Of a stretch of 64,000 nucleotides of DNA, positions 3,405 to 55,182 are shown piece after piece. The position numbers and the translations under genes are program-made. Numbering within the stretch: the first letter of the stretch is position 1; each line of letters opens with the position of its first letter. The DNA lies in sequence record PP496438.1. One strand, given 5' to 3'. Under the pieces are notes generated by a model. The model was given only the letters and a program-made list of their open reading frames with translations. It had not been told where the DNA came from and ran no database searches.

Positions 3405-4937
3405 TTAACTGATGCGGAACAGTCCGCCTTGAGCGAGTTCACGCACACGCGAGTTGCCCTTCTGAACAGGTTCATTCAGGAAGGATGCGGTGCTTACCTG
3501 GCGCAACGGGGTCTCGAGTTGGGTTTCCAGCTGCGCAGTAGAAGCCTGACGGCCAGTGCTGCGAGTCGAGGAACCTACCGGAGTAGTGGACGCGATGGTT
3601 TCCGCCAGATCATTCAGGCTGCTCGGATCACGGGCTGCCAGTGTCTGAGCCAGCGCGAGGACGTTTTGGTTATGTTCGTCTTCGGTTTCGGCCAAAGCGC
3701 TCTCAACCATGGCTTGCGCGTTCTGTACACCGGCGGTGGTCAGATCGGCAATCAGGCGTTCCTTCACTTTGTGTGGGGTGTTACGGAAGAACCCACGGGT
3801 CATACCAGCTGTCGCCAGCTGAAGGCCATGCAGCAGTCGTTCGGTCTGATCGCCAACGGTGTCGGCGACTTCGGCGGCAGCGACAGCCTTAGCCTTTTCT
3901 TGCACGAATGCCATCGCCATCGCGGCAGGGGCCTTGAAGCTGTTACGCTGGAAGCCGTAGCTAGCCAGAGTTGCGTCCAAGCCGTCCTTGTTGAACGTCT
4001 GGGCGATTGCTTCCATGTAAGCTGGCTCGCCGAAGATATCGGCGTTGGCGGTTTCTGCGGTCTTGTGCAGGACAGCCACGGTCTGATCGTTGACGTTAGC
4101 CAAGATCTTGCCGTTCAGCGGGATGAATTCAGCAGTCGCGTTTTCACTCAGGCCAACCGAGGACAGCGCTTCGAGAACGTCGATGTTCATATCTTCGGGC
4201 TCGTCACATTGGTCGGGGTTCTGCGTGGACTGGATGACTTCGGCTTCTTCAACCGGTTCGTCGTCCGACTCCTCTTCTTCTTCCTCGTCGTCAGCTTCGG
4301 CGGACGCAACCACCGGCTTCTGCTTCGGCATGATGATCATCGGATTGTCCTCGGCGGAAGCTTCTTCCTCCAAGTCCTCGTCAGACTCATTCGATTCGTC
4401 GTCTTCCAGTTCTTCGTCGTCGGCGCTGGTGTCGTCATCGCTTAGATCCGAATCGTCTTCCGACTCTTCTTCATCATCAGCGCTGGCTTCTTCGGCGGGT
4501 TGATCGCCGTCCCATGCCCAATCGGCGTTCGCGTCTTCTTCGTCGGTAGCAGTGGTATCATCCTCTGCACCAGCGAGAGTTACGCTGGGGTTCAGTACCA
4601 TCCCCGTACCGCATTCAACACAGCAGATCTCTACGTGGCCTTCTTTGTTCACTGGCATTTGCGCCAGCTCTTCATCGAACATCACGTTAGCCACGGTGCA
4701 CTGACGGCACTGCGCGCTGGTAAGGCTATCTTCTTCCGACTGGTTAAAGACGGAAGCAGTGATTGCCTCAGCACGCTGTTTCATGGCTGGACTGCCGCAG
4801 TGACCGCAGAACGGATCGCACCCCGCCAACGCTACCGTTTCCTCTTTGCAGTGACTGCACTGGTATGAAGCCAGTACAGCTTGCTTGAGGCTACGCATGG
4901 TTGGGGCGTGAGAAGCGATCATGGTGAGCTTCGGCAT
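3405..4937 (-). CDS. Putative prohead scaffold/core protein with N-terminal Zn ribbons and a long acidic linker
   Basis: Start moved to 4937 (MPKLT, RBS AGGAG). Four CxxC pairs (CSHC, CGHC, CRQC, CVEC), ~100 aa Asp/Glu-rich tract, helical C-terminus, upstream of the capsid genes. Confidence 0.5.
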   Translation of the reverse strand: MPKLTMIASHAPTMRSLKQAVLASYQCSHCKEETVALAGCDPFCGHCGSPAMKQRAEAITASVFNQSEEDSLTSAQCRQCTVANVMFDEELAQMPVNKEGHVEICCVECGTGMVLNPSVTLAGAEDDTTATDEEDANADWAWDGDQPAEEASADDEEESEDDSDLSDDDTSADDEELEDDESNESDEDLEEEASAEDNPMIIMPKQKPVVASAEADDEEEEEESDDEPVEEAEVIQSTQNPDQCDEPEDMNIDVLEALSSVGLSENATAEFIPLNGKILANVNDQTVAVLHKTAETANADIFGEPAYMEAIAQTFNKDGLDATLASYGFQRNSFKAPAAMAMAFVQEKAKAVAAAEVADTVGDQTERLLHGLQLATAGMTRGFFRNTPHKVKERLIADLTTAGVQNAQAMVESALAETEDEHNQNVLALAQTLAARDPSSLNDLAETIASTTPVGSSTRSTGRQASTAQLETQLETPLRQVSTASFLNEPVQKGNSRVRELAQGGLFRIS

Positions 4938-5264
4938 GCGAAGTGCTCCTCTTGCTGTCAATGGGCTGCTACATACTATAAGCATGAGCAGATCTTCGAG
5001 CAGGCCACCTCGACGGTCCCTGCTACGGTAAACTCGGATTCACCCCTCCACGCGTATATAACGTTTTGGGAACAATTCAAATTACATACGACCAGAGTGC
5101 CATGGTGTCCATACCTGCGTCAAAACGCCCGTTTGCCATCATGTCGGGATATGCCCAGCCATATGAGTGCTAAGTCATTGATTACCTTGACAATTTATTA
5201 GGGGGTATGTGGCCCCCTAATTCATGGAAATTAAGGTATTTTGGCTATATCTGCGTCAAAGTGC

Positions 5265-5356: not shown

Positions 5357-5833
5357 ATGAAGAGTATGATTCGCCGCAAAGATGGGTTTTACACGGAGTT
5401 GTTAGCCGGTGCAAAAGACCCTGTTGCCCTGTCCAAGACTGCATTCAACCGTGGACTGACCCGGATCGTTGCATCTATTACGAGCAGTGTGAAGCTGCGG
5501 TACGTAGTAGATTCCGAAACCGGTGATGCGGAATACCGGGTACGAGTGAAGTTCCAGAAAAGCCAATTGACCCGCAAGGGTACTCCGGCTATCAAGGTAG
5601 GAAGGGTACTGGTTCCCGTTGATCTCGACAGCATTGCAGTACATTGCACGTGTCAGGACTTTCGATTCACCTGGTACACCTATTTGAAGAACGCTGGGCA
5701 CGCTGCCGGTTGGTTCAAGCAGGTGGAGTTGAAAGGTTCTGGCCGTACTCGGGAAGCTGACCACGCAGGTTGCTGCAAGCACATCGCCGGTGTACTGGCA
5801 ATGGTTGAGCAGAACGTTATCGTCAAGCTGTGA
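5357..5833 (+). CDS. SWIM-type zinc-finger protein
   Basis: Start at 5357 (MKSMIRRK, RBS AAGGA, downstream of the promoter). Motif VHCTCQDF...GCCKHIAGVL fits CxC-xn-CxH. Confidence 0.7.
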   Translation: MKSMIRRKDGFYTELLAGAKDPVALSKTAFNRGLTRIVASITSSVKLRYVVDSETGDAEYRVRVKFQKSQLTRKGTPAIKVGRVLVPVDLDSIAVHCTCQDFRFTWYTYLKNAGHAAGWFKQVELKGSGRTREADHAGCCKHIAGVLAMVEQNVIVKL

Positions 5834-5920: not shown

Positions 5921-8707
5921 TTAGGCAAAGTCTTTCTGTGCCAGCACCAGTGGGACGCCGACAGTATCCAGTGATATCTGGGTGAACTCCTTCAATTCTG
6001 ATCTGGTCAGCTTCCGGCTCAGCATCACCCCATCGTGCTCTTGTGCCACCACGATGTCTTTGTGTCGCATGTTGAACTCTATCATCACCGCTTGCTCCAT
6101 ACCGCAGGTGATGAAGTGCAGCAGCTTCGACTTCTCCTTTTGTGTCGTCCACCCATTTAGCATCTTGTCCGTATAGAAGAAGGCCACTGACCCCAGCGCA
6201 TTGCGAACGCTCACTGCGCTGGCGGTAGCATTGTCTGGATCAAGTCCAGCATCTTTGATTGATCTGGACAGCGACTTGTACAGGAAGTAGTTCTGCTTGG
6301 CGATCAGATCTCGATTGACCGGCAGCTTGACGTGTTCAGTTACCTTGTAGTCAGGGTGCGCAAGGATCATGCTGGGCAATGCCTGCATCGTCCTAATCAC
6401 GGGGAAGATCAACCGGTTGGTGGTGTAGATCAAAGCGATTGCCAGTTCCATCATCTTAATCTTGAGGGCTTGCACGTGGCTCTCATTCAACTCCAGTTCA
6501 ATCGGTGCAACCAGACCCCGGATCAGCTTGTCGATGGTGTCGGGCACCACGGAAGATTTCAGGATGGACTCATACGATGTCTTGAGGCTGGACCCGTACA
6601 TGACGGACAGGAACATCAGCTTGCAGACTCCGTCGATAACCCGGATGAACTCCTTCTCCTTGCGCCACGTTTGACCAGGCGTTTCCCCTGCGCTTTTCCA
6701 TACCTGATGCAGCGCCAGCCGATCATTCCGCCTTGACTCACTTCCAGACCACTTGGGTGATCCGTATACACCAGCTCTCCATGGGTTCCGTACCATGACC
6801 AGCGCCGACTCCAGCAAGCCCTTGAACCCAGAATCCTCCATCTCAGTCAGCACGTGCTCCGTCCACGTCTTGGATTCGTACATGCCGAAGATGGTCAACG
6901 CGCTATCCACATCCCGGTCCGTGAGGAACACCTTGCCGTATTCGTCTATCGTCTCGACCAGTTCCTTGCGATACTTCTTGATCAGTCCGCCGATCAGCAT
7001 AGGGTGGCAAGACTTGACGTCGTAGTTGACGTACCCACTCTTGGTGAGGATCACCTGCTTGAGTTGGTTGGGCAATGAGCCAAAACCCACCGGAGAGTTT
7101 ATCCGGGGCGAGCGCAAGGTGGTGAAGTGATGTGCACGGTGCATGACTACCTGGTTGTGGCGGTCGCTGCTCCCTTGCTGGCACCCCAAGTTCTCCGGGT
7201 TGATCATGCGGGCCAGCGTACGGAAGGCACCGGAGGATATAGCGTCACCCGAGGTGTGGTGCATCCAGCTCAGCTCCGCAAGCAGGTCGTTGACGGGTAA
7301 GCGCACGCTCTTGGTGGACAGCATGCGGATATAGGCCTTAACGTTGACCGGGACAACGGGCCGGGTCGAAAGGTTTATGTTGTCGCTGATCTCCTTGTAC
7401 GTCGGGTTGTTCACCACACAAGACTGAACCATTGAGACGCGACGTAACATCGTGCATGCCTTGATCGGCACCTTCTTGTCATGGAACATGTACAGCTTGC
7501 CCGGCTGGCCGGACAGATTGTCGTTCGCCACCAGCGACTCACCGTAGGGCAGCTGAGAACTGAATACCATGACCGCCTGCCCACGTTCGGCGAACGCGTA
7601 GATGGCATTAGGTAGTACTCGGTTGCTACCCTTCAGATTGGTCAGCCAGCGGCCCAGCGGTTTCACGTCACGAGGCCGGCCCATCAAACGCCCATGCAAG
7701 TAGGCGTCAACCTTATCCATGTACGAGTCAACGAACTGTGTGACCACGGGACCAGGTTCAAAGGTGAACGTCTTGTGCTTCCAGTAGTCTGCTTCCGTGG
7801 TCACAGCCATCAGCCCCATGCTCTCCAGCACAGCGCGCACGGTATCCCAGTGATACGTCATCTGACCTTTCTTCGATCCTTCGATGTTCCGCCAGTTGAT
7901 CAGGTTGTTGAACCGCTTTTCACCTTGATGCGAACCAAGACCATAACCTTCGCGCACCTGATCCTTCTTGATCGCGAACTGGGTATCGTGGCTGTGATCC
8001 AGGTCAATGTGTAGGAACCGGGACACAGACCGAGCGTGGTTCAGGTCCATGGGGAATGCCAGCTTGTTGGTCAGGTCCTTGGGGTTGAACGCAGGGTTCC
8101 ATTGAAAGCCGTCCTTCGAGGTTCCCTTGTGCACGGCGGACACCAGATGTCGGGCCATCGAGTCGCGGGAGTCGAAGTGGCCTTTGTCATTCACCTTGTC
8201 CAGCAGCATGGGATATGCCACGACAAGTCGGGCAATCAGGAAGGCGAAGCAGTAGGCGGCAGACGGGCCGGGCGCACAGTTGCGTTCCGCCATCTTCTGG
8301 AGGAACGTCTCATACTGATCAAGGATGAAATAGCCCAGACCGGGCGTGACCGCTACCGGCAGGCCAACGACGCGGCTGTCCAGCCAGCTCTTACCACTGG
8401 GGTACAGGTTGTGCTTGGGGTTCAACGAAGGTTCAACCACCATCATCCGCACATAGGGGATGTGGGCCTGCACCCATTCAACATTGGCTTGGTCTTTAGC
8501 TTCGGGGAAGTCACGGGTAGCTTCGCCCACCTTGGCAATGAGATCAGTATTGAAGCGCCCTACATCCTTGACCTCGGGGGCCAGTGCTGGGTTTAGTCGA
8601 GCAGTAGCCTTGATGATGGGTACTTGGTCATACACGGGATACAAGTCTAGGGGCTTGGACAGTATGCCTGCATACTCCTTTTCCGAGAGTGGGGTGTAAT
8701 CAGCCAT
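5921..8707 (-). CDS. 928-aa protein with C-terminal family-A/T7-like polymerase palm (TV-Pol-like); no proofreading exonuclease motifs seen
   Basis: Motif A-like RINSPVGFGSLPNQLKQVIL..GYVNYDVKSCHP; motif B-like CKLMFLSVMYG (K-x7-YG); motif C-like MEQAVM...VAQEHDGVML at the C-terminus. Confidence 0.55.
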   Translation of the reverse strand: MADYTPLSEKEYAGILSKPLDLYPVYDQVPIIKATARLNPALAPEVKDVGRFNTDLIAKVGEATRDFPEAKDQANVEWVQAHIPYVRMMVVEPSLNPKHNLYPSGKSWLDSRVVGLPVAVTPGLGYFILDQYETFLQKMAERNCAPGPSAAYCFAFLIARLVVAYPMLLDKVNDKGHFDSRDSMARHLVSAVHKGTSKDGFQWNPAFNPKDLTNKLAFPMDLNHARSVSRFLHIDLDHSHDTQFAIKKDQVREGYGLGSHQGEKRFNNLINWRNIEGSKKGQMTYHWDTVRAVLESMGLMAVTTEADYWKHKTFTFEPGPVVTQFVDSYMDKVDAYLHGRLMGRPRDVKPLGRWLTNLKGSNRVLPNAIYAFAERGQAVMVFSSQLPYGESLVANDNLSGQPGKLYMFHDKKVPIKACTMLRRVSMVQSCVVNNPTYKEISDNINLSTRPVVPVNVKAYIRMLSTKSVRLPVNDLLAELSWMHHTSGDAISSGAFRTLARMINPENLGCQQGSSDRHNQVVMHRAHHFTTLRSPRINSPVGFGSLPNQLKQVILTKSGYVNYDVKSCHPMLIGGLIKKYRKELVETIDEYGKVFLTDRDVDSALTIFGMYESKTWTEHVLTEMEDSGFKGLLESALVMVRNPWRAGVYGSPKWSGSESRRNDRLALHQVWKSAGETPGQTWRKEKEFIRVIDGVCKLMFLSVMYGSSLKTSYESILKSSVVPDTIDKLIRGLVAPIELELNESHVQALKIKMMELAIALIYTTNRLIFPVIRTMQALPSMILAHPDYKVTEHVKLPVNRDLIAKQNYFLYKSLSRSIKDAGLDPDNATASAVSVRNALGSVAFFYTDKMLNGWTTQKEKSKLLHFITCGMEQAVMIEFNMRHKDIVVAQEHDGVMLSRKLTRSELKEFTQISLDTVGVPLVLAQKDFA

Positions 8708-8757
8708 TGGATAGCTCGCGTATTACCGGAGTGAATGGAATTGGACGTTATCAGCCC

Positions 8758-8763
8758 ATTTAC
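8758..8763 (-). promoter_or_regulatory. GTAAAT putative phage-specific promoter element
   Basis: ATTTAC on +, 51 nt upstream of the 928-aa gene start. Confidence 0.55.
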
Positions 8764-9485
8764 CAGACTATATACAGAGTATCTTATGGGGGTTAAAAAG
8801 GACCATCTTGCAATTATTTGGGTCATTAATTCCCTTTCATACCCTAAACCTCTATCTGTGAATACGGGGGTAGTTATCCCTAGATACATCCCTATTACCT
8901 GTGTCTATTGACCATGTAGACTCTATTCCCCTATCGGGGACTATAACCTCGAAAAAGGTTCCTAGCTTGCATGGGCTGGCCCACCCACCCCCGTGGCCCC
9001 ACCCGACCGCCCGGTTAAGGCCATACCTAGGGATTCCTTTCTCCCAGAGGGACCCCCAGCCGCCCATCCTTCCCCTGCTCCTCCCTTTCCTTCATCATCT
9101 ACACCCACCCAGCTATTGACTTACCATCTAGTGATCCTCCTTCCTCCAGCTTCTACATAGGCAGTTAGTTTCCCCATGCCTCTAAGTCCCTACGCTTCAT
9201 CATGCACTTATGCTCTGTAGTACTGATTCCCCCACATGCCCGTGACTTATGCTCTGGTGTCAGTATTCCCAGCCTCCCAGGTGAAAAGGGTGTCCATGTG
9301 CCGTGTGGGTTGTCCGGGGAATAGCGCCCGTGGATAGGGCTTCCAGGCGTGCGATATGGGGAGTTTTTCGGGGATGGGTAAGTCAGTATGGCTGGGAATG
9401 GGGAATGAAGCGCCTGCGAGCTTGTAGGAGCCCGTGGTTATTGGCGGGATATGCAGGACTGGGACGGGGGTTTCCTGCGGAGGTG
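8764..9485. other. Long non-coding, strand-skewed region; candidate replication origin
   Basis: Largest gene-free gap in the window. AT-rich segment ~8760-8960. + strand is C/T-rich to ~9290, then G-rich. 12-bp direct repeat ACTTATGCTCTG at 9206 and 9245. Only low-complexity ORFs. Confidence 0.4.
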
Positions 9486-9519
9486 AAAAAGCCCGCACGG
9501 CTTGGGACCGATACGGGCT
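9486..9519 (-). terminator. Intrinsic terminator ending the minus-strand accessory block
   Basis: AAAAAGCCCG-18 nt-CGGGCT. Confidence 0.6.
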
Positions 9520-9525
9520 CTGGTA

Positions 9526-9816
9526 TTACTTGACGTACTCGGGATGTCTCACTTGCGGGTGACACACGAAGTCAATGGACTGCACGGGTAAGATGAGTGG
9601 CACCGTGCCCTTATACTTGCGGATCAGCTGGGCGTATATCTCACCGTCCCACTTGCCCAGCTCATTCGCTTGACTAACTCTCTCATCTAGGGAGAGCCGG
9701 GTTGCCGCTGACCAGCAGTCTGACTTGGCTGTGGGTCCGTCGAACGTCTGGATCGGCGTGTAGCCGTTGTGCAACGCGGTGAAGACCGCGAGCATCAGGA
9801 AGTAACCCGTGTTCAT
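9526..9816 (-). CDS. Hypothetical exported/membrane-anchored protein
   Basis: Hydrophobic N-terminus (YFLMLAVFTAL), two Cys, ATGA overlap with the upstream gene. Confidence 0.55.
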   Translation of the reverse strand: MNTGYFLMLAVFTALHNGYTPIQTFDGPTAKSDCWSAATRLSLDERVSQANELGKWDGEIYAQLIRKYKGTVPLILPVQSIDFVCHPQVRHPEYVK

Positions 9817-10652
9817 TTTAGTATCTCGATAGGTGGCTTCTTGGCGTTGGGGTTCGGACGGGGTTTACTGTCAGGGTTCAGGGTCGCCGGTTCCCTCCAT
9901 TCGTACCTCGCCGGTCTTTCCTCTGTGCCCACGGTGTCGTCACCCGGCAATTCATCTATCAGCTTGTAGTAGCCAGTGGCCTGATCAATCGTGGGTTCCA
10001 CATAGATCTTGGTGTGGATGGCCCCTTGCCTACTGACACATAACCTGCGAATGACCGGGTGTTCCTTAGTGCCGAACCTCGGCCCTCCAACCAGACTGGC
10101 TGTGTAATACGTCGGCCCCTCCGGTGGAATCTCTACGTATGTGCCGGGTACGTTCCCGTGATATAGCGGGGGATTAGTCTGCGTGCTGCCCGGCGTCACC
10201 GCATCTGGTCCGTCCGGCGTGCCTTTCATCTTCATGCGATACACGCGGATCATCTCATGCAGTTCGCCGCCCGGCTTTAACGCGTCTGGGTCATCCGCGT
10301 GAATGAAGGCCAGCATGTCGATAGCGTCTACTTCAAAGCCTATCGCCTCAAACGGGATCAGCTGGAACTCCTGATACACGCCGGGGATCGGATCTTGCGG
10401 TCGGTACAACGCGACCACTCTTCCTTTGCCCGGCTCGACGCCGAGTACGCTTTCGTCTCGACCCACCCACATCTCACGTGATCCCGGCACACTAGCTGGC
10501 ACGTGTTCGATAGTACCTTTCGGGTAGTGCGCGTTGAACGTGGCAGTGAAGCACCGCAGGTTGCCCTTGTAGCAGCGGAACGGTTTGGTCTCTCTGGCGT
10601 GACGGGTCAGTGGGTTGTTCATCGGTGTAGAGTGTTCGACGATCAAGCTCAT
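9813..10652 (-). CDS. Hypothetical protein (279 aa)
   Basis: Long ORF, RBS GAGGA, co-oriented with neighbours. Confidence 0.7.
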   Translation of the reverse strand: MSLIVEHSTPMNNPLTRHARETKPFRCYKGNLRCFTATFNAHYPKGTIEHVPASVPGSREMWVGRDESVLGVEPGKGRVVALYRPQDPIPGVYQEFQLIPFEAIGFEVDAIDMLAFIHADDPDALKPGGELHEMIRVYRMKMKGTPDGPDAVTPGSTQTNPPLYHGNVPGTYVEIPPEGPTYYTASLVGGPRFGTKEHPVIRRLCVSRQGAIHTKIYVEPTIDQATGYYKLIDELPGDDTVGTEERPARYEWREPATLNPDSKPRPNPNAKKPPIEILK

Positions 10653-10687
10653 GTTGCATTCCTCTTAGGGGTAGTGGGGTGTTGCGG

Positions 10688-11020
10688 TTAGTCGTTGAAC
10701 TCTGCTGGATCGAAGCCGTGCTGCTCGCACCAGTCCCGGCGGCGCTCTACAATTTCACGTGCCTGCTCTTTGGAGTAGATGGCACAGCGGATCAGATCAC
10801 GGATATCCCCCATGCGCTTCCACATGTGGAACCCTTGATAGAAATCATCAAGTGCCTGTGTGTGTTCCTTGATCAGCGACGTGATGTGGAAAGACGGTTG
10901 GGTCAGCTTCATCAGCTCGGCGTGGTCTTTCGCGAACTGGGCCAGCTTGTTGCTCACCCAGATGTCGGCTTTGACTTGCAGCAGGGCGTAGTTGGTGTCA
11001 GTGTTCATGGTGTACCTCAT
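10688..11020 (-). CDS. Hypothetical protein (110 aa)
   Basis: Fits the gene array; helical amphipathic sequence. Confidence 0.6.
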   Translation of the reverse strand: MRYTMNTDTNYALLQVKADIWVSNKLAQFAKDHAELMKLTQPSFHITSLIKEHTQALDDFYQGFHMWKRMGDIRDLIRCAIYSKEQAREIVERRRDWCEQHGFDPAEFND

Positions 11021-11032
11021 TGGGGTAGTGGA

Positions 11033-11566
11033 TTATTTCTTCATGCCTTGGCGCACGAACGTGAGTGGTTCGAAGGGTGGTCTCTCAAACCACGATACGG
11101 GGTTTGCTCTCTCCAATCCGGCACGCCACCCCAGATAAAAACTGGCGGTGACGATGGACTGACGACGGTTAGTTATCTCGATCCTTCCAGTTGCCATCAG
11201 CGTCTTGATGTCCACGAAACCCGTACGCTCGACCTCGATGTCAACTTTGCTCCAGTGCTCCTTCGTCTTAGCGAAGTCGGATACAGCTTTCGGTTTGAAC
11301 AATTTCTTGTCGGTGAAATACACGACGGGGTTGGTGATCTTACCCAGTGCACGATCTGAGCGGCTGGTGTGATACCAAGCCTCATGAACTACGCTGGCAA
11401 TGTCTCCCACCCCGATACGCGCAGCCAGGCATTGCCATACGGTCGGGGCAAAGCACACACGCAGCGTCTCAGCGCATTCGTCGCGGTTCCTGCCGATTGG
11501 CACCTTGGCCTTCAGGATGACGTGCTTGCCTAGATCTTTCACGGACACGTGATAAAAGCGGGGCAT
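11033..11566 (-). CDS. Hypothetical protein, possibly ADP-ribosyltransferase-like fold
   Basis: FYHVS strand, RVCFAPT strand and a late EHW motif resemble the H-x-S/T ... F-S/A ... E arrangement of ART folds; RBS AGGAAG. Confidence 0.4.
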   Translation of the reverse strand: MPRFYHVSVKDLGKHVILKAKVPIGRNRDECAETLRVCFAPTVWQCLAARIGVGDIASVVHEAWYHTSRSDRALGKITNPVVYFTDKKLFKPKAVSDFAKTKEHWSKVDIEVERTGFVDIKTLMATGRIEITNRRQSIVTASFYLGWRAGLERANPVSWFERPPFEPLTFVRQGMKK

Positions 11567-11613
11567 GGTGTGGCTTCCTATTGGACAGTGGGGCGGCAGT
11601 GTGCCGCACGTGC

Positions 11614-11643
11614 ATGATATCAGATGGGAACCATGGGTGTCAA
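11614..11643 (-). promoter_or_regulatory. sigma70-type (early) promoter
   Basis: On -: TTGACA (11643-11638), 18-nt spacer, TATCAT (11619-11614), immediately downstream of a terminator. Confidence 0.65.
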
Positions 11644-11662
11644 CACCCGACCGACGCAGGTG

Positions 11663-11696
11663 AAAAAGCCCACGCAGCGGCTAGGCAGGTGGGCTT
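11663..11696 (-). terminator. Intrinsic terminator
   Basis: AAAAAGCCCAC-15 nt-GTGGGCTT. Confidence 0.7.
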
Positions 11697-11700
11697 GAGG

Positions 11701-11991
11701 TCAAACGAGCTTCAATACTGGCCTTGGTTTTTCACCTACGTCAACGGACGCATGTAGTTCCAGATCAAGTGCGAGCCGTATTAAGTCCGAGTAGGGCTCT
11801 CGTGAGTGTGCCCAAACGTCTGGCAGTGTCGTGCGGTAGACGTGGACAACCGTGTGCAGCTCTTCCTTGGCGTAAACACCTGCCCGCATCAACTGAGTAA
11901 CCCGTGCACGCACCTTGGGTGTGATCCACGTGATCAGATCCTCATACGTTCCGGTCCAGATCATCACCTGATGATTAACGCGCTTCGCCAC
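11701..11991 (-). CDS. Hypothetical protein, paralogue of 13771-14103
   Basis: Shared W-G--E-L---T, PDV and LKLV motifs; GTG start with RBS GAGG. Confidence 0.6.
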   Translation of the reverse strand: MAKRVNHQVMIWTGTYEDLITWITPKVRARVTQLMRAGVYAKEELHTVVHVYRTTLPDVWAHSREPYSDLIRLALDLELHASVDVGEKPRPVLKLV

Positions 11992-12316
11992 TGGACACCT
12001 CTTTGTTGGTCAGTATCCAGCCGATGCTCAGGACCAGACGTGGCCCATGGCACATAACCCTGTGTCGGTTGATGTCAGGACGGAACAGGTTGAAGCGACC
12101 CTTGATCTTGGCGTCCGGGCACTGGAACGCTGTAGTCGAACCTCGAAGCACGATGTTAAACCGCCAGTGTCTCTTGCCGGGAACTGGATCGGTATGCCAT
12201 GAGATTCCTTGTTTGTCCATGAACCGGATCAGGTACAGGTCACCATATCGGCACTGGAACAGCAGCATCTTGAGGTACTCCCCGCCACGACCTTGAACCC
12301 ACGTGAACCATTTCAC
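11975..12316 (-). CDS. Minimal 2OG-Fe(II) dioxygenase-like protein
   Basis: WHTDP (HxD) ... LFRPDINRHRV (distal His) ... PRLVLSIGW (Arg on last strand), the DSBH facial-triad pattern. Confidence 0.55.
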   Translation of the reverse strand: MKWFTWVQGRGGEYLKMLLFQCRYGDLYLIRFMDKQGISWHTDPVPGKRHWRFNIVLRGSTTAFQCPDAKIKGRFNLFRPDINRHRVMCHGPRLVLSIGWILTNKEVSSGEAR

Positions 12317-17949: not shown

Positions 17950-18164
17950 GACTTATCTCCAGTCAGGGGTGTGACTCCCAGGTAATTGCCGATGCGCGGA
18001 ATGAACAATGGGCAGGCAGTTACACAGACCCAAGCAACGGACATGGGGAACACTACCCCTTGCAACATCGACCAGCCACATGCAAACAGGATGATCAGAC
18101 TAAGTACTGCGTAGTACGCGGACCAGATGATCAACCACCAAGCCTTACGGGACACGTTCTTCAT
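17946..18164 (-). CDS. Small two-TM membrane protein (72 aa)
   Basis: Start moved to 18164 (MKNVSRKAWW, RBS AAGGAG); two hydrophobic segments. Confidence 0.6.
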   Translation of the reverse strand: MKNVSRKAWWLIIWSAYYAVLSLIILFACGWSMLQGVVFPMSVAWVCVTACPLFIPRIGNYLGVTPLTGDKS

Positions 18165-19768
18165 TTGTTCCACTCCTTGCGAGCCTTTAGCTGGGCTTCG
18201 GTAGGGGCCACCCGGAATCGTGTGTTCTGGGGCGACAAGTTCTTGAGCAGTGTGGTGGTCACACATTCGTGCGGCGTGATATGCAGCAGCAGGTCACTGG
18301 CTCGGGTATACGACACGTATTGAACGTGGGGCAGCTGGCCGTCTTCACAGTCGAACCAGTCGTCGATCACCGCGACTCGTTCACTCTCCATCCCCTTCGC
18401 ACCCCATGAGGTGTTAAGTTCCACACCTTTGCCGTGGTCATTGGCAATGATCTTGGTGATGAACGTCTTCACTTCGGCAGCGCTACCAAGGTCCCAGTTG
18501 GTGACGATGTACAACGCAGCGTCTGCGGCATCCTTGATCAGTGGTTCCTTTGCCTCCTTACGCAAATCATCCAACGCCTTAACGAAGTCAAGAGTGGACT
18601 TGCGACCACAACGCATGGCGACACCAATCACCTGCTCAAGCACTTTGGCTTTCTTGAAGGTAACCTCCAGTCCGCGATCCATGTACTCCAGCGCGATGCG
18701 GATCAGATGCTTGTTGCGGGCGCTGACCACACGCTGCACGTCGAACTTGATCATGCTCTTGATGCGGTACGGGTCCTTCTTGGTGTGCGCCGTCAGCATC
18801 TTGACTTGCCCACCCTCGGCGAAGGCTTCAAGCGGCACATCGGGGAATCGACCCTTGACGAACTCGACGATCTTCGATTTGGACCGGTACGTGGTGGTAG
18901 ACGGCAATCTCTTAGCGTTGAACTCCTTGAACATGTCAGCCATGCCCGCGCTCAACCCACCTCGGAACGCATAGATGGCCTGCCATGGATCACCGACGAA
19001 GACGAACAACATGCCCGGCTTCAACCGGCGGAACAGGCGAAGCGTGTCGTGCTGCACAAGGTTGAAGTCTTGGAACTCATCGACGAACAACACGTCCGGC
19101 AGGATCTTCGCCAGCGTGGCGTACTGCGTGCGGATAAAGCTGTTGGCCAGAACCATGCGGCTCATGTCGTTGAAGTCTACCGACGACGTGGTCTCATCAC
19201 TGGCTTCCAGCGCCTCACATATTTCAGGAAGCAGTGGCACCACCTTCTCATGGGGAATCAAGAAGCGGTACTTGCCGGTGATCAGTTCCTTGATCTGCTT
19301 GGGGTCGCTGTAGGGAATGCCCAATTCACGGATACGCTCTCCGTGCCAGCGGATGTCCTTGTTCACACGAGGCCCGTCTTGGGGGAACAGTGCGTCCACC
19401 ACCTGGAACCACTTGTCGAACATGATCGGTACGGCCTTGGCACCCGTCAACGTCTTGAACAACTCCAGCCCGTAGCTGTGCATGGTGGAACTGGAGACCG
19501 CCCGATCCTTAATACGCCGATCGAACACCTTGGCGTTGTCCGTGTTGAACACGATGGCGCGCATGGTCAGCTTCGGGCACTCTTTACGAATGCGGCGGAT
19601 AGTCTCGATGATCAGGGTGGTCTTACCCGATCCGGCACCGGCGTCGATGCCCACTGCGTCTTGTGGCTTGCCGGTGTACAAGTCTTTAGGCATCGACTTG
19701 GCTTTCTTCAAGATCTCGTTGAAGATGTCATTCTGTTGCTTGGACCAAACTCTTTCAGTAGTGGACAT
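18161..19768 (-). CDS. Superfamily 1 (UvrD/Rep-like) helicase
   Basis: DAGAGSGKTT (Walker A), LFVDEFQD, VGDPWQAIYAFRG, TTYRS, GAKGMES, YVSYTRA. Confidence 0.9.
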   Translation of the reverse strand: MSTTERVWSKQQNDIFNEILKKAKSMPKDLYTGKPQDAVGIDAGAGSGKTTLIIETIRRIRKECPKLTMRAIVFNTDNAKVFDRRIKDRAVSSSTMHSYGLELFKTLTGAKAVPIMFDKWFQVVDALFPQDGPRVNKDIRWHGERIRELGIPYSDPKQIKELITGKYRFLIPHEKVVPLLPEICEALEASDETTSSVDFNDMSRMVLANSFIRTQYATLAKILPDVLFVDEFQDFNLVQHDTLRLFRRLKPGMLFVFVGDPWQAIYAFRGGLSAGMADMFKEFNAKRLPSTTTYRSKSKIVEFVKGRFPDVPLEAFAEGGQVKMLTAHTKKDPYRIKSMIKFDVQRVVSARNKHLIRIALEYMDRGLEVTFKKAKVLEQVIGVAMRCGRKSTLDFVKALDDLRKEAKEPLIKDAADAALYIVTNWDLGSAAEVKTFITKIIANDHGKGVELNTSWGAKGMESERVAVIDDWFDCEDGQLPHVQYVSYTRASDLLLHITPHECVTTTLLKNLSPQNTRFRVAPTEAQLKARKEWNK

Positions 19769-19833: not shown

Positions 19834-19895
19834 AGCGTATAGCAATCGAATACGTGGAATTAGCCCTTAACGGCGTCCCCACTAGCGGAGAACAC

Positions 19896-21374
19896 ATGAA
19901 ATCTGTAGCCGTTGACTACCAAAAGATAGCCAAGGAATGCCAGTGTACCGAGCTGCCTTCTAAGGTAAGAGTTACGCGTGCACGGGTCTATCCAAACTTG
20001 AGGACGTGCCTACTCTTCCTCAAGTACGATGCCAAAGGCGATCTGGTGCAAGCCGAGATCACTGCGCCGTACGACACTTCCACCGAGCCAAAGGTGCGTG
20101 TGCTCAAGCACCCGGACAAGAAGTCCGACTTCCTTTCATTATATAGAGCGCTGATCCGCCATCAGATCATACCCGAGTCTATTCCGAAGAAAGGTAACGG
20201 GATTGCACCGACGCTGGAGGTAATCGGCACACTGGTGAGCCTGCTGCCGGAACGGGATGTCGAAACCTTCCGAACCCTGACCCCGGCCATCCAGACTGGC
20301 AGCGTCATGTACGTCCCTCTGGTTACGTCCCGGCCAATGCCCATGGTGCAACACTGGATACCCGTTGACCAGCATTCAGAGCTGGGCATGATCGAGCTGG
20401 TCGATACGGATAGCAAGCCTTTCCTTAATCAGTGGGTCAACAGGTTGAGCAACACCGCCACCGGTTATGTGATCTACACCCCGGAAGGCTCACACGGTCA
20501 GGAACTCGCCTGCTTCCGTGTGCCCAATGTGCAAGGAGAGGAACTGTGCGTGGTCAAGAAGGTGGACTTCACCCTTACCGTTGCTCGCACCCTCAAGCCG
20601 GTACTGACCGTCTCCACCAAGAGTACGCGTGCCGTATCCCGCATTCCCCTACCCCACTATCTGATGCTGCGCAATCACCACATCAAGGTGGGCACGGTTA
20701 TTTCCCTGCGGCGTAACGACCGAGGTGGGTTGGTGTACCATGAGACGGTGGCAGAGGAAGGGATGACACCTCTGCCACTGTGCCCACATTGCCATAGTGG
20801 ATCTGTGCTGCGAAGTAGTAGCAATGACGTGTACTGCAATAACGATTCATGCCGAGGCCTAGCCATCGTGCGACTTCGCTACATCTTGAACAACAAGCTG
20901 GACGTCAAGTACCTGAGTCAGAACAAGGTGACGGCGTTGGTCAACGACAAGCAGGACCTGTTCAGCTTGCTCAAGACACCGACTCACCTATTGCGGCACA
21001 GAGCGGGCTTCGGTGCACGTACGGTGGATGCGCTGGAAGAGAAGCTGAACACTATCGCCGGTCTTCCACTGCACACGCTGGCCGAGATGTCCTGCGCTTT
21101 CTACAACGTGGGTGTGCCCCCGCTGGATGAGATGGTGTTCAAGAAGATCTTTTCCGTGATGTCGCTTGACCACCTGAAAGCACTGCCCTCCACCGGTAAG
21201 ATGTACAGCCAGTTGCTCGACATCGAAGGTATCCGCAACAACCGCGCAGTGGCTTTCCTCGCTGGTTGGCCTGCATTTCAACAGTGGATGATAGATCTTA
21301 ACGCTGCCCTACAGTCTCGTAGCGCAATCTCCTCCACGGTAAATAACCCGAAACAAATTCGAGGTGTTAAATGA
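19896..21374 (+). CDS. Degenerate NAD+-dependent DNA ligase homologue (OB, C4 Zn finger and HhH retained; KxDG lost)
   Basis: Start moved to 19896 (RBS GGAG). By-eye colinearity with LigA: LEVIGTL, ACFRVP, VKKVDFTLTVARTLKPVL, IKVGTVISLRR, CPHC..YCNNDSC, GFGARTV, DIEGI. The KLDG position reads NLRT. Confidence 0.7.
   Translation: MKSVAVDYQKIAKECQCTELPSKVRVTRARVYPNLRTCLLFLKYDAKGDLVQAEITAPYDTSTEPKVRVLKHPDKKSDFLSLYRALIRHQIIPESIPKKGNGIAPTLEVIGTLVSLLPERDVETFRTLTPAIQTGSVMYVPLVTSRPMPMVQHWIPVDQHSELGMIELVDTDSKPFLNQWVNRLSNTATGYVIYTPEGSHGQELACFRVPNVQGEELCVVKKVDFTLTVARTLKPVLTVSTKSTRAVSRIPLPHYLMLRNHHIKVGTVISLRRNDRGGLVYHETVAEEGMTPLPLCPHCHSGSVLRSSSNDVYCNNDSCRGLAIVRLRYILNNKLDVKYLSQNKVTALVNDKQDLFSLLKTPTHLLRHRAGFGARTVDALEEKLNTIAGLPLHTLAEMSCAFYNVGVPPLDEMVFKKIFSVMSLDHLKALPSTGKMYSQLLDIEGIRNNRAVAFLAGWPAFQQWMIDLNAALQSRSAISSTVNNPKQIRGVK
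21339..21344 (+). promoter_or_regulatory. GTAAAT element before first QueC-like gene
   Basis: 32 nt upstream of the 21371 start. Confidence 0.45.
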
Positions 21375-51739: not shown

Positions 51740-51780
51740 AGCACGCATGAAAGTCCCCGTTTTTGAAGAGGGTAACCTGT

Positions 51781-54700
51781 GTGTTAATATCCAGAGCGTC
51801 ATTAGAGAAGTTTGATTTCGGAAGTCTGTTTGATGATCACGTCAACAACGTTGGCAAACCGTACAAGGTACAGTCAGTAAGATCAACGGATTGGTTCCAG
51901 TCCAAGGAACGTCTGCTGGTGATCATGGGTCGCCCCAACTACCGGGATGCCAAAGACGAAGTGCGCTGCATGATGGGCGCAGATGAAACCCGCATGGTGT
52001 TCGATAACCTGCTGGACTTGGCTGCGTCCAACGCTGAGGTTTATGCGAAGAAGGCGGGAATCAAGCTACGGTCCCGTAACAAGCACGCGATCATGGTCAC
52101 CAACTTCCAGATTGCTGACCTGAGTTCAGCGTCGGAGGAAACAGAGTCCATCGCCAACCACGCAGCGGCGAATCGCGTCTCCATGCTGATCCACGTGACC
52201 CGGCCCACCAAGGTATTGATCGTCGGGCTGTACGCCGAGTCGTACCTGATGGAACGCTCGGGCATCGAGTACCCGGCCAAGAAGCGCGGCAACCCGCATC
52301 AGGTTGAGTTCAAGGTTGAGTTCAAGCCCAACGAGAAAGAACTCAAGCGTATGCAGTCACTGGAAAAGATGCGATCCAAGGCGTTGGTACGGGAACTGGA
52401 GAGCAACGAGTACCACCCATGGGTCAACTTCTTTCTTGAGGAAGTGGCGCACGAAGGTGCCAAGCTGGCTGACTTCGCCAAGAAGGGTGGAACCTACTCG
52501 CTGAGCAACACGGTCCAGACGTTCTCCACCATCGACTATGACCGGGCGTTCACCAGTGGTTCCGGCGAGAGCGACCTCGATGATGACGCGGTGGTAGAAG
52601 CCAACCTGCTCGGGTACGTGAGCCGGAACATCGCTAACTGCCTGCTGGGCTGCAATCCATTCAGCCTGCGTCATCTGTTCAGTGAGAAGCAACCGTCCGG
52701 GCCAAAGGGTAAGCCTACGATTCAGTGCCACTATGTCGATACGCTGAAGAAGTTCGACACCCTGTGGGATAAAGTGATGGAAGCGGACCTGGTGTCCCTC
52801 GACGTTGAGACGACCGGCTTCTACCCGCACACTAACCGGTTGCTGTCACTTCAGGTAGCCACTCGTAAGGAGGAAGGTTTCTTCGTCCCGCTCTATCACA
52901 AGGACACCCCGTTCACCAAGAAGGAACTGGAGCACATCCGTCTGCGCGTCAAAGCGTTGCTGGAACTCAAGGTTACCTATCACAAGAACCAGCGCCGCAA
53001 GCGCATGATGCTCGGCCAGAACTTCGGCTTCGACAAGAAGTGGCTGATGCACTGGTGCGACGTACGCTATCTGTACTGGCCGGTGTGGGACACTATCGCC
53101 GGTGAGTTCTGCCTCGACGACAACCTCAAGGGTCTGGTGGGTAAAGCCCTCGGCTACAAGTACACCCCGTTCTCGTTGGACTCCATTGTGGCGTCGTACG
53201 AGAACTACCACTATTTGGAATCGGAGTTCGGTAAGGAAGATCGGACGACCATTGAACATGTCAAGTTTGGTCCAGGTGAACCAGTGGTAACCTATGGTTG
53301 CATGGACGTTGTCTTCCCCATCGCCGCCATGGAACAGCAACTGAACCGTGCAGAGTGTGAGCACTGGCCGACCGGTAACTACCGAGACACAATGTTCAAC
53401 TTCATGCTGGCCCAGATGTCAAACATGATCAAGGTGCAGTCGGGTATGTCGCACCGAGGCATCATGATGGACCAAGGTTACATGGAGTTCCAGCTGAGCG
53501 AAGAAGGTGTGTTTGCCAAGGACGTGGAACGCCTGACCCGCGAGTTGTACGCGTCCAAGAACGTGAAGAAAGCATCCGAGATGCTCAGGGGAAAGAAAGG
53601 TATTCCTCAAGGTTCCCTGTTCGGTAATGCGGGTGGTGACGCTGCGGGCTTCAACCACGCCAAGCAGGAACACTTGGAGATCCTCTTCTTCGACGTGCTC
53701 AAGCTGGCACCGGTCAACGTCAAGAAGGAGACCGATAAGCGCTCGCTGGACGATGACTTCAAGAAGGCGTACAAAGCCGTACCAGAGGTTGCGTGCTGGG
53801 CGCAGATGGGTAAGATGCAGCGGTTGCTCGATACGTTCATTCGCGCCATCTATAACCACATGAACAACGACCCAGACTATTCGGTGCACAACAGGCTCCA
53901 TCCCGGCTACGGGTTCAAGGAGGTTGTGACCGGTCGATCCAACAGTAGCAAGCCGTCGCTCCAGCAGATCCCGGTGCACAGTGCCGAGGCCAAGTACGTC
54001 AAGCGGCAGTTCGTGGCCCCGATGTGGACCTTGTTCGATGACGCTGACTATAGCTCTCACGAGGTTCGCTGCGCGGGTATCACGGCGTTCGACGAAGCTT
54101 CATGCTCGGGCTTCCGCAAGATTCACAACATCGTACTGGATCACAGGCTGTATCCATCGAAGGACAACAAGATCGTCCTGCTCACGGCGGGCGACAGCCA
54201 CAAGCAGAACTACTCCCGCTTCACCGGTCTGGATATCAAGGAATGGATCACCTTCGACTTGACCGAGGAAGGCAAGAAGAAGGCAAAGGCACTGCGACAA
54301 ATCGCCAAGACCATCGTGTTCGGTGCGATCTATGGTAAGTCGGCACCCTCGCTGGCCGCAGAGCTGGGTATCAGCGTCGAGGAAGCAGAAGAGCTGCTGT
54401 TCAACTTCTTCAAGGAGTTCGCGGACCTCAAGGACTGGCTGGAATGGACCAAAGACTATTCCAACAAGCACTTGTACACCTTCGGCCCCCACGGTCGCAA
54501 GCGCCGTCTGTTCGGCTACATCACCGGCATCAAGCGTACCCAGTCTGCGATGGAACGTCGTGCGCAGAACTCGCCAATTCAAGGCTTCGCATCGGACGTT
54601 ATGTTCGACGCCGCTGAGATGTATGCGCAAAAGCAGCATGAGGTGTACGCACTGATCGAAGCCAACCGTAGCCTGCGCAAGATGCTGAGCAAGGAGCTGG

Positions 54701-55182
54701 AGATTGTCAATCAGTTCCCGACCGGCGCCAACGTTCTGGTGCACGACTCCAGCAAGTCAGAGTCGCCGTTCAACTTCCTGCTGATGAACATGCACATCAA
54801 AGAGTGGTGTATGACCACCGGCGTCCAGACCTATCTTGAGTCCAACTTTGACATGCAGTTCTTGACCCCGTTCGGTATCGACTTCGACATCGGCGCATCG
54901 TGGGCAGACATGGAAGGATGGGACTTCAACCCGACCACCCTGATCGGACCTCAGCCCAAGGACAAAGACGGCAAGCCGGGGATGGGCATCATCGAGACGG
55001 CACTGGAGAACAGCCAGAAGATTCACAACTACTCGTTCAACACCGACAAGGTGGCGCAGGGTATGTTCAACTCTTACCACATGCTGCGAGACGAGCTGAA
55101 GCTGGATGAACTCTTCCCGTTGAACATGAAGTATTGCGTGGACAAGGACTGGCAGGTGCCTACTCCGAAACTTCCAAAGTGA
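51781..55182 (+). CDS. polA: Family A DNA polymerase with 3'-5' exonuclease and N-terminal UDG-like domain
   Basis: Probable GTG start at 51781 (RBS GAGGG). Exo DVETTG/NFGFD/YGCMDV; TGRSNSSKPSLQQIP; DADYSSHEVR (A); KTIVFGAIYG (B); LVHDS (C). N-terminal RPTKVLIVG..A..L resembles UDG family 4. Confidence 0.93.
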   Translation: MLISRASLEKFDFGSLFDDHVNNVGKPYKVQSVRSTDWFQSKERLLVIMGRPNYRDAKDEVRCMMGADETRMVFDNLLDLAASNAEVYAKKAGIKLRSRNKHAIMVTNFQIADLSSASEETESIANHAAANRVSMLIHVTRPTKVLIVGLYAESYLMERSGIEYPAKKRGNPHQVEFKVEFKPNEKELKRMQSLEKMRSKALVRELESNEYHPWVNFFLEEVAHEGAKLADFAKKGGTYSLSNTVQTFSTIDYDRAFTSGSGESDLDDDAVVEANLLGYVSRNIANCLLGCNPFSLRHLFSEKQPSGPKGKPTIQCHYVDTLKKFDTLWDKVMEADLVSLDVETTGFYPHTNRLLSLQVATRKEEGFFVPLYHKDTPFTKKELEHIRLRVKALLELKVTYHKNQRRKRMMLGQNFGFDKKWLMHWCDVRYLYWPVWDTIAGEFCLDDNLKGLVGKALGYKYTPFSLDSIVASYENYHYLESEFGKEDRTTIEHVKFGPGEPVVTYGCMDVVFPIAAMEQQLNRAECEHWPTGNYRDTMFNFMLAQMSNMIKVQSGMSHRGIMMDQGYMEFQLSEEGVFAKDVERLTRELYASKNVKKASEMLRGKKGIPQGSLFGNAGGDAAGFNHAKQEHLEILFFDVLKLAPVNVKKETDKRSLDDDFKKAYKAVPEVACWAQMGKMQRLLDTFIRAIYNHMNNDPDYSVHNRLHPGYGFKEVVTGRSNSSKPSLQQIPVHSAEAKYVKRQFVAPMWTLFDDADYSSHEVRCAGITAFDEASCSGFRKIHNIVLDHRLYPSKDNKIVLLTAGDSHKQNYSRFTGLDIKEWITFDLTEEGKKKAKALRQIAKTIVFGAIYGKSAPSLAAELGISVEEAEELLFNFFKEFADLKDWLEWTKDYSNKHLYTFGPHGRKRRLFGYITGIKRTQSAMERRAQNSPIQGFASDVMFDAAEMYAQKQHEVYALIEANRSLRKMLSKELEIVNQFPTGANVLVHDSSKSESPFNFLLMNMHIKEWCMTTGVQTYLESNFDMQFLTPFGIDFDIGASWADMEGWDFNPTTLIGPQPKDKDGKPGMGIIETALENSQKIHNYSFNTDKVAQGMFNSYHMLRDELKLDELFPLNMKYCVDKDWQVPTPKLPK

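Follow-up and report, generated by a model that had tools for sequence, protein, structure and literature searches.

Diverged family-A polymerases and the SKa4_00167 locus

Large phages can carry diverged variants of PolA, named divPolA1 and divPolA2, that lack an active 3′-5′ exonuclease and occur beside a regular DNA polymerase (DNAP); divPolA2 carries a globular domain of unknown origin at its N-terminus, and whether it acts as a repair DNAP or an RNA polymerase (RNAP) has been left open (PMC11348598). TV-Pol is a predicted prim-pol with a minimal family-A-like core and no nuclease, a subset of which has an uncharacterised N-terminal domain (PMC2579912), and CcPol-MP of SCCmec is an exonuclease-less A-family polymerase that makes primers together with a small partner encoded adjacent to it (PMC7581432, PMC10061031). 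Here we analyse SKa4_00167, a gene of Pseudomonas phage vB_PpuM-SKa-4 (SKa-4; PP496438.1, 202,022 bp), a jumbo myophage isolated in Estonia whose host is P. putida (PMC7616413). The window under analysis is the final 64,000 nt of this record, and a window position equals the record position minus 138,022. SKa4_00167 reads from an ATG at 8707 down to 5921 and encodes 928 amino acids and a stop codon; the first-pass annotation of the window had the coordinates right and left the strand, which is the minus strand, unstated. We find convincing evidence that the protein belongs to a family of jumbo phage proteins in which catalytic positions of family-A polymerases are invariant, and that the gene stands among replication genes and is exchanged between phages as a cassette. 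Our tentative preference is for a prim-pol-like accessory polymerase that acts in replication or priming, a reading to which we give somewhat less than an even chance.

The closest published concept is the divPolA1/divPolA2 pair of Yutin et al. 2024 (PMC11348598), for which the sequence comparison was made with the divPolA2 representative, AUR84708. As with divPolA2, SKa4_00167 is a second PolA-like gene beside a DNAP, encodes no exonuclease and has an N-terminal domain without known origin, and the GGRMY..IQNLP block of divPolA2 is like the GGRLFE..FQNLP block of the family described below. In contrast, the divPolA2 motifs differ (YDFKAFE with a Glu, and FDE where the family has EHDG), and the hidden Markov models (HMMs) of the family did not detect AUR84708, which ranked 210 and 47 among 2000 of its own shuffles. 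The carriers differ as well: divPolA1 and divPolA2 are known from Flavobacterium ‘immuto’ and barbaviruses and from Vibrio 1.063.O, whereas the family occurs in jumbo myophages of Pseudomonas, Vibrio coralliilyticus, Erwinia, Dickeya and Yersinia.

By analogy, the closest mechanistic models would be TV-Pol and CcPol, both likened here by their described features. TV-Pol is defined by an absolutely conserved Arg in a hairpin before the palm and two Asp residues (PMC2579912), and the corresponding R535, D563 and D892 are invariant in the family; the viruses that carry either of the two also encode a replicase, and ESM Atlas neighbours of the SKa-4 C-terminal part look like D5_N-fused domains, which is an indirect lead. 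The family differs from TV-Pol in being neither fused nor adjacent to a D5-like helicase, resolvase, integrase or transposase, and the RxxxK of the fingers HTH is not kept in SKa-4. The likeness to CcPol lies in the small downstream genes of Erwinia phages, which are exchanged along with the polymerase-like gene; however, no OB-fold or SSB partner is recognised, and the SKa-4 downstream gene is convergent.

A distant family with invariant catalytic positions

Direct searches with the SKa4_00167 protein returned only nine copies from P. putida phages, SKa-4 included: seven sisters are 97–98% identical, and the copy of phage Peetri (P0002, 1010 aa) is 32% identical. These searches covered 5.8 billion word-indexed proteins, 1.84 billion representatives compared exhaustively by HMM with a two-lineage profile, IMG/VR, and 50,697 phage records by tblastn at E ≤ 10. 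The sole additional match, P0010, is a surface repeat protein and was rejected as spurious.

The wider family was found through synteny. For both the canonical PolA and the ATPase encoded nearby, the closest relatives are those of the Vibrio coralliilyticus phages GR7B and GR11A. In GR7B, the same helicase, RNase HI and head-gene block holds GR7B_00126, a 618-aa hypothetical protein encoded between a Rep helicase and RNase HI, which aligns with the SKa-4 C-terminus to the final residue (I-L-Q-G-M-E-A-A, I-E-H-D-G-F, and K-P-F-A against K-D-F-A). The relatives of GR7B_00126 are phrog_30690 (‘unknown function’), present in about 50 records of jumbo phages that infect Erwinia, Dickeya or Yersinia, the carriers being Alexandravirus, Sasquatchvirus, Salmondvirus and Yoloswag; IMG/VR contributes just more of the same phages. 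The family has no function in PHROGs, and in GenBank all members are ‘hypothetical’ except one ‘putative helicase’, in Erwinia phage pEa_SNUABM_5 (MW366843.1 / NC_061450.1, 180527-182191), a label that is probably a mis-annotation since nothing in the family supports it.

The published phrog_30690 HMM recognises GR7B (3e-10) and SNUABM_32 (6e-90) and does not match SKa-4. An HMM built from 11 Vibrio, Erwinia, Dickeya and Yersinia sequences, with neither SKa-4 nor Peetri among them, gives SKa-4 a score of 15.2 bits (P = 4e-7) and Peetri one of 12.9 bits (P = 2e-6), against 7.8 bits for the best of 4000 shuffles. Both proteins give two domain hits in the correct order, G-F-x-x-L-P..K-Q..N-x-D and then Q/C-G-x-E...E-H-D-G, and hhalign places SKa-4 with the family at P = 0.001–0.002. 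On these sequence comparisons we regard the membership of SKa-4 in the phrog_30690/GR7B_00126 family as convincing, for a candidate that was chosen by synteny and is very distant (17–20% identity).

The first-pass annotation had read three family-A-like motifs at the C-terminus of the protein, and these lie where it placed them, in the order A-B-C and within the C-terminal 370 residues: YDVKSCHP is residues 562–569, with D563 as its Asp, the K-x7-YG of motif B follows 133 residues after motif A, and HDG is residues 891–893, a further 196 residues on. Two PolA-like blocks can be added to that list, one at residues 530–551 and one at 868–873, where C-G-M-E-Q-A resembles QGTAAD (Table 1). In an alignment (A4) of 12 sequences 17–38% identical to SKa-4, the residues R535, K550, N561, D563, K696, G869, E871, E890, D892, G893, K925 and F927 are invariant. 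Among them are the positions that serve template contact, metal binding and triphosphate binding in family-A polymerases. The two Asp residues, on whose conservation in homologues the initial reading depended, are thus among the positions that do not vary, and the motifs are more than chance, because the catalytic positions are invariant in 12 divergent homologues and the HMM scores exceed those of 4000 shuffles. An ad hoc five-motif regular expression, which matched SKa-4 and 0 of 200,000 shuffles, was given no weight, as it missed most family members, T7 DNAP and 89 of 120 PolAs.

The motif A consensus of the family is N-x-D-M-x-S-S-Q, and the N of its SSQLN aligns with the steric-gate Glu of PolA; in the family alignment SKa-4 has M570 opposite this N, and Met or Leu is found there in SKa-4 and Peetri. 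Motif C is E-H-D-G throughout, so that the second carboxylate of HDE is absent. Both the steric-gate Glu and the motif C Glu are near-universal in family-A DNA polymerases. In motif B, the residue eight positions after the Lys (K+8) is Tyr or Phe across the family. At K-4, where an Arg is expected, SKa-4 has Asp (D-G-V-C-K) and Peetri has Gln (Q-S-A-C-K), while most Erwinia and Dickeya members have a basic residue and [KR]xxxK occurs in the SNU52 group as well as in several further members from Erwinia, Dickeya and Yersinia phages. The SNUABM_52/16/35 subgroup reads R-x-T-A-K-T-L-N-Y-G-G-I-Y-S, which has the canonical R-x-x-A-K-x-x-N-Y-G-x-x-Y pattern and is close to the Pol I motif B consensus RRSAKAINFGLIYG. 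Core members of 525 aa have PolA-like motif spacings, with about 235 aa from the Arg block to the end and C-termini other than KDFA, while SKa-4 and Peetri carry long insertions in the fingers.

In front of this core, the first-pass annotation had seen about 530 residues of unrecognised N-terminus. This region has no library match, and it has no detectable relative even within the family: residues 1–400 give P = 0.41 against the jumbo-phage family by hhalign, and in Atlas features they reach no more than 0.83. The earlier statement that exonuclease motifs are lacking also agrees with our scan, in which Pfam finds neither an exonuclease nor any other domain in the SKa-4 protein.

Profile comparisons link the family to family-A DNA polymerases. 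Among 177,635 distinct PDB sequences, all 14 matches of the family profile are Pol gamma chains at motif B (best E = 0.011), and with SKa-4 left out of the profile all 13 matches are again Pol gamma chains at motif B. By hhalign, the family aligns in register with a phage PolA profile from motif B through the QG block (P = 0.005, 132 columns) and with a bacterial Pol I profile (P = 0.047, 93 columns), the latter pairing Y..GGRLFE..GFQNLP with TGRLSS..PNLQNIP, S-S-Q with the Y-S-Q of motif A, and then motif B; motif 2, motif A, motif B and the QG block are accordingly collinear with the family. A two-lineage profile matched PolA at motif B only (P = 0.087). Closest by language-model features in the ESM Atlas are phage proteins without names, and models of two of these resemble PolA and D5_N-fused (TV-Pol-type) domains, as a lead only. 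Pol gamma and Pol I (PF00476) are the sole solved structures matched by the family profile, yet the family lies below every curated threshold, and DNA_pol_A matches neither SKa-4 nor any of 12 family members at E ≤ 1. The earlier description as a second, highly divergent family-A-like polymerase therefore holds as regards collinear motifs, invariant catalytic residues and profile links to Pol gamma and PolA, and finds no curated HMM match behind it. In our judgement the family probably has the family-A fold, and the SKa-4 protein may have the RRM-like palm, fingers insertion and helical thumb of this right-handed form.

A protein this diverged might instead resemble polymerases by convergence or as a vestige, and be an inactive structural or regulatory protein. 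SKa-4 itself has no significant match to any polymerase model, the confidence of both its AlphaFold2 models is low, motif B is without the Arg of RxxxK, and motif C reads HDG. Against this, the invariant residues are those that do family-A chemistry, they are kept in sequences as little as 17% and at most 38% identical to SKa-4, the motif order is collinear, and the PDB matches are exclusively family-A polymerases at the homologous motif. We consider a non-enzymatic protein very unlikely.

The same profiles bear on a specialised, non-proofreading DNA polymerase, acting in repair, lesion bypass, recombination-dependent synthesis or gap filling and comparable to divPolA1/divPolA2 or Pol theta/nu. 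In profile comparisons the family most resembles DNA polymerases (Pol gamma, Pol I), not RNAP; some members have the canonical DNA-polymerase motif B, the gene occurs beside a regular DNAP in the manner of divPolA1 and divPolA2, and UvsX, SbcCD, ligases and a Holliday junction resolvase are encoded in the genome. However, the whole family lacks the steric-gate Glu and the motif C Glu, and the wholesale replacement of alleles with flanking non-coding DNA, described below, is not known for such enzymes. A repair polymerase is in our view improbable.

The missing carboxylates could point in another direction, towards a single-subunit DNA-dependent RNAP like those of T7, N4 and mitochondria (PF00940), which would transcribe a small gene set or make an R-loop primer at the adjacent non-coding region, to be processed by RNase HI and extended by PolA. 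T7-like RNAPs share with the family the Asp of motif A, the K-x7-YG of motif B and, in motif C, an HD with a small residue after it; where DNA polymerases have HDE, the HDG of the family is akin to the HDS of T7 RNAP, and the family has Asn at the steric-gate position. The SKa-4 motif spacings of 133 and 196 residues may be set beside 94 and 181 in T7 RNAP and 53 and 124 in Klenow. A long N-terminal domain is found in RNAPs that recognise promoters, and the F-A-COOH end of SKa-4, Peetri and GR7B is another shared trait, the K-D-F-A of SKa-4 recalling the DFAFA end of T7 RNAP as a visual likeness only. The same possibility was raised for divPolA2 by Yutin et al. (PMC11348598), and group 3 jumbo phages are without RNAP subunits and sigma factors according to Iyer et al. 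(PMC7824862).

Several results speak against an RNAP. The T7 RNAP profile aligned at an unrelated place with P = 0.33, a profile that is shallow (sequences 74–98% identical) because the T7 RNAP protein search gave only close relatives; the RNAP HMM scores members no better than shuffles, and PF00940 has no Pfam match in SKa-4 or the family members. The 525-aa core members have PolA-like spacings and lack the KDFA end. The SKa-4 annotation includes a sigma factor and no RNAP, which implies use of the host RNAP. In the 202-kb genome, a k-mer search found no promoter family: no 14-mer exceeds 4 copies, and the top 9- to 12-mers are coding-biased words. A transcriptase serving many promoters, moreover, could hardly be swapped for an allele of 32% identity. 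A general transcriptase is disfavoured by the lack of a repeated promoter-like element, the lack of a T7 RNAP profile signal and the annotated sigma factor, and we judge an RNAP of any such kind unlikely, with about one chance in a handful in its favour.

Replication context, upstream DNA and cassette exchange

The context of the gene is replication in all three lineages. In SKa-4 the neighbourhood runs from a UvrD helicase through RNase HI (PF00075) to SKa4_00167; in GR7B it is Rep helicase, GR7B_00126 and RNase HI; and in Erwinia phage SNUABM_3 the family gene stands between a DnaG primase and a clamp loader. The SKa-4 and GR7B loci are alike in that the helicase and RNase HI block adjoins head and ATPase genes. 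No D5-like helicase or recombinase is found in the SKa-4, GR7B and SNUABM_3 neighbourhoods, and no informative domain was recognised in the neighbouring small genes. The SKa-4 annotation also lists a DnaG-type primase, a clamp loader, UvsX, SSB, helicases, ligases, SbcCD and a Holliday junction resolvase. A complete canonical PolA, which the first-pass annotation had set beside this gene, is present elsewhere in the window (Table 1), and SKa4_00167 would accordingly not be the bulk replicase.

The first-pass annotation set the gene next to a candidate origin; directly upstream of it lies the largest intergenic gap in the inspected annotation, 818 nt that begin, on the side of SKa4_00168, with a terminator-like hairpin right after that gene. 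A 13-nt repeat, ACAGAGCATAAGT, occurs in two copies at 9206 and 9245, 39 nt apart, and nowhere else in the genome. In the sense of the gene, the first 390 nt or so of the region, both copies of ACAGAGCATAAGT included, are 90% conserved with Peetri, and the remainder is replaced. The variable part contains a purine- and G-rich block about 445 nt before the ATG (77% purine, G-skew 0.73, G4-type runs), a composition equalled in 0.09% of genome windows. Together with the RNase HI gene of the module, this block and its G4 motifs would suit an RNAP that makes R-loop primers; the local repeat, present twice only, would not serve a wider set of promoters. An Rfam scan of the upstream region gave no match, and a simple scan for promoters and terminators found no more than chance would give. 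Long upstream gaps of 330–1000 nt are found in most of the other loci examined (GR7B, GR11A, SNUABM_3 and the SNUABM_52/16/35 group), while SNUABM_32 has just 136 nt.

Comparison of SKa-4 with Peetri reveals that the gene has been replaced in place. The exchanged cassette comprises 438 nt of the upstream non-coding DNA and codons 1 to about 862, between flanks that are 90–91% identical in DNA; the neighbouring proteins are 70–98% identical, against 32% for SKa4_00167. The last 66 or so residues, which hold GMEQ, EHDG and KDFA, lie outside the cassette and have 91% DNA identity. Since the recombination breakpoint falls inside the gene, the conservation of motif C in this pair is not independent evidence, unlike its invariance across the family, which by sequence is. 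Within the SKa-4 clade the protein is conserved like its neighbours (97–98%), and its divergence is therefore the result of replacement and not of fast drift.

The same behaviour appears in the Erwinia phages. SNUABM_32 and SNUABM_35, both Alexandravirus, have 75–79% DNA identity on either side of a 3-kb unalignable island that contains a small upstream gene, the polymerase-like gene (alleles 21% identical) and the downstream small gene or genes, and two records under the species Sasquatchvirus Y3 carry different allele types. The genes directly downstream (L008 6834-7840; L035 7604-8635) change with the allele type, two of about 165 aa accompanying one type and one of 343 aa the other, and in the SNUABM_32 type the first of them overlaps the stop codon of the polymerase-like gene. 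It is possible that these genes encode partner proteins.

Modular replacement is to be expected of a specificity module, consisting of an enzyme and its site or partner, or of a gene in an arms race. In the latter case, the product would serve counter-defence or conflict, built on a nucleotidyltransferase scaffold like that of a polymerase, or would be sensed as a target by host defences. Its allele is replaced between phages that are otherwise 80–98% identical, two allele types of about 21% identity coexist within the genus Alexandravirus and differ between the two Sasquatchvirus Y3 records, and the 3-kb island is exchanged with small neighbouring genes; in addition, P. putida prophages impose strong restriction on the G3 phages (PMC7616413). 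On the other hand, no PADLOC or anti-defence family matches, the position among replication genes is kept in three lineages, and in the SKa-4 clade the gene evolves at the rate of its neighbours, its divergence arising by exchange. A role in host conflict appears to us highly doubtful.

The exchange of upstream DNA invites a more specific reading, in which the gene and the DNA before it would form a portable ‘initiator plus site’ cassette: a single-subunit polymerase derived from PolA would start synthesis, of RNA or DNA, de novo at the G/purine-rich region, RNase HI would process the product and PolA would extend it. Enzyme-site specificity in such a cassette would lead to the exchange of whole alleles with their upstream DNA between sister phages. 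In mitochondria, a family-A replicase and RNase H process R-loop primers made by a single-subunit RNAP, and the cassette would be a phage analogue of this priming by POLRMT, Pol gamma and RNase H1. We hold this version to be rather unlikely.

A possible role in starting DNA synthesis

The preferred reading, an accessory replication or priming polymerase, can be put as follows. The product of SKa4_00167 would be a catalytically competent, extremely diverged polymerase core of the family-A (PolA/T7-RNAP/TV-Pol) type, which retains the template-contacting Arg, the metal-binding D563 and D892 and the O-helix K696 and Y704, and which is without a proofreading domain. This core would be extended by a lineage-specific N-terminal region of about 400–530 aa and by the fingers insertions, and would represent the P. 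putida phage branch of the phrog_30690 and GR7B_00126 family, seated in the replication region of jumbo myophages that have a T7-like replicative PolA. It may act as a low-fidelity initiating or primer-making polymerase, with deoxyribonucleotides (dNTP) or ribonucleotides (rNTP) as its substrate, at a particular site or with a particular partner. Such specificity would lead phages to swap the gene as a unit, along with upstream DNA in the Pseudomonas phages and, in the Erwinia phages, with small genes that lie downstream. Priming or initiation would fit the context better than general transcription, given the position in a replication module, the long upstream non-coding DNA and the cassette exchange.

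A number of observations weigh against this assignment. The links to family A, taken one by one, are marginal (E = 0.011; P = 0.005 and 0.047), and family members score no higher than shuffles with the PolA and T7 HMMs that we built. Sequence searches of Pfam, PHROGs, NCBIfam, PADLOC and PDB with the protein, its halves and the two-lineage profile gave no match. The AlphaFold2 models, of the full length and of residues 396–928 and made from shallow alignments, have predicted local distance difference test (pLDDT) scores of 41 and 51, and comparing them by Foldseek with PDB and by a wide VIA-align search returned helical noise only. With Asp at K-4 in place of the RxxxK Arg and HDG lacking the second carboxylate, the SKa-4 protein could be impaired or use another chemistry. 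A DnaG-type primase is already encoded, so that a second primase is not obviously needed; neither a D5-like helicase nor an SSB-like partner adjoins the gene in SKa-4; the purine- and G-rich block is not common to the Vibrio and Erwinia loci; and the cassette exchange fits an arms-race gene equally well.

Table 1. Features of the SKa4_00167 locus and the canonical polymerase, in window coordinates
Feature	Coordinates	Strand	Evidence
SKa4_00167, whole gene, putative diverged family-A-type polymerase	5921..8707	(-)	Open reading frame and translation; coding sequence annotated ‘hypothetical protein’
C-terminal K-D-F-A-COOH	5924..5935	(-)	K925 and F927 invariant; GR7B ends K-P-F-A; other members have C-terminal extensions
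Motif C, Q-E-H891-D892-G893, residues 886-895	6023..6052	(-)	E890, D892 and G893 invariant in 12 sequences; HMM domain hit 851-900
H-x-x-x-C/Q-G-M-E block, residues 864-879, counterpart of PolA QGTAAD	6071..6118	(-)	G869 and E871 invariant; aligns with PolA-profile QG..SD and GR7B QGMEAA
Motif B / O-helix, K696-x7-Y704-G705, residues 692-707	6587..6634	(-)	K696 invariant; block giving the Pol gamma matches; best local hhalign match to PolA
Motif A, N-Y-D563-V-K-S-C-H-P-M, residues 559-570	6998..7033	(-)	N561 and D563 invariant; aligned to DYSQIE
TLRSPR...GFGSLP...KQ, residues 530-551, counterpart of PolA TGRLSS..PNLQNIP..(I)R	7055..7120	(-)	R535 and K550 invariant in 12 sequences; HMM domain hit 541-580
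Lineage-specific N-terminal region, residues 1-400, no recognised fold	7508..8707	(-)	No Pfam, PHROG or NCBIfam match
Exchanged cassette, ~3 kb without DNA similarity to Peetri	6121..9145	(-)	blastn of SKa-4 locus against Peetri locus
Upstream non-coding region, 818 nt	8708..9525	(-)	Annotation gap
Canonical family-A DNA polymerase	51763..55182	(+)	Pfam DNA_pol_A 3.1e-38, DNA_pol_A_exo1 1.2e-4 (weak); homologues named ‘DNA polymerase’

Several neighbouring features were recorded alongside the locus. The synteny anchor, SKa4_00165 (‘ATPase’, window 3405-4985, minus strand, 510 aa), adjoins head genes, has no Pfam match and has relatives in Vibrio, Xanthomonas and Erwinia jumbo phages. Between it and the polymerase-like gene lies the convergent SKa4_00166 (window 5357-5833, plus strand, 158 aa), which is 97% identical in Peetri and has a weak SWIM zinc-finger match below threshold (E = 0.009); GR7B_00128, of similar size and orientation, adjoins the ATPase homologue in Vibrio phage GR7B. 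On the other side, window 9526-12300 (SKa4_00168 to 00173) is a variable zone in which 00168, 00170 and 00173 have no Peetri counterpart, and 00169 and the acetyltransferase 00175 match Peetri over their N-terminal parts only. Gene orientation switches between a UvrD-type helicase (18161-19768, minus strand) and plus-strand genes (19854-21374, plus strand), and the AT skew changes sign at about 18–20 kb in the window, an alternative candidate for an origin or a divergent promoter region. The canonical PolA reading frame, 1139 aa from a TTG, is longer than its 1087-aa annotated homologue, and its true start is therefore probably further downstream. Many relatives of this PolA (P0147, P0153-P0164, P0173-P0174, P0199, P0212) have 1100–1590 aa and contain intein or homing-endonuclease domains (PF14528, PF14890, PF07591). 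No public sequencing runs are listed for SKa4_00167.

Cryptic second PolA-like enzymes in large phages, namely divPolA1 and divPolA2, have been recognised only recently. The family described here would add a third such group, unnamed in databases and carried by some 60 cultured jumbo phages whose hosts are Pseudomonas, Vibrio, Erwinia, Dickeya and Yersinia, together with an evolutionary behaviour, the in-place replacement by 20–30%-identical alleles that bring along flanking non-coding DNA or small partner genes. Should the enzyme indeed prime or initiate, it would show how jumbo phages of this class begin DNA synthesis, and that the family-A scaffold can be pared down to a form with HDG, without a steric gate and without RxxxK. 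Were it an RNA polymerase instead, it would close the gap noted in those jumbo phages that are described as having no RNAP of their own. In both cases, the family may provide a compact and diverse natural set of polymerase variants for biochemistry.

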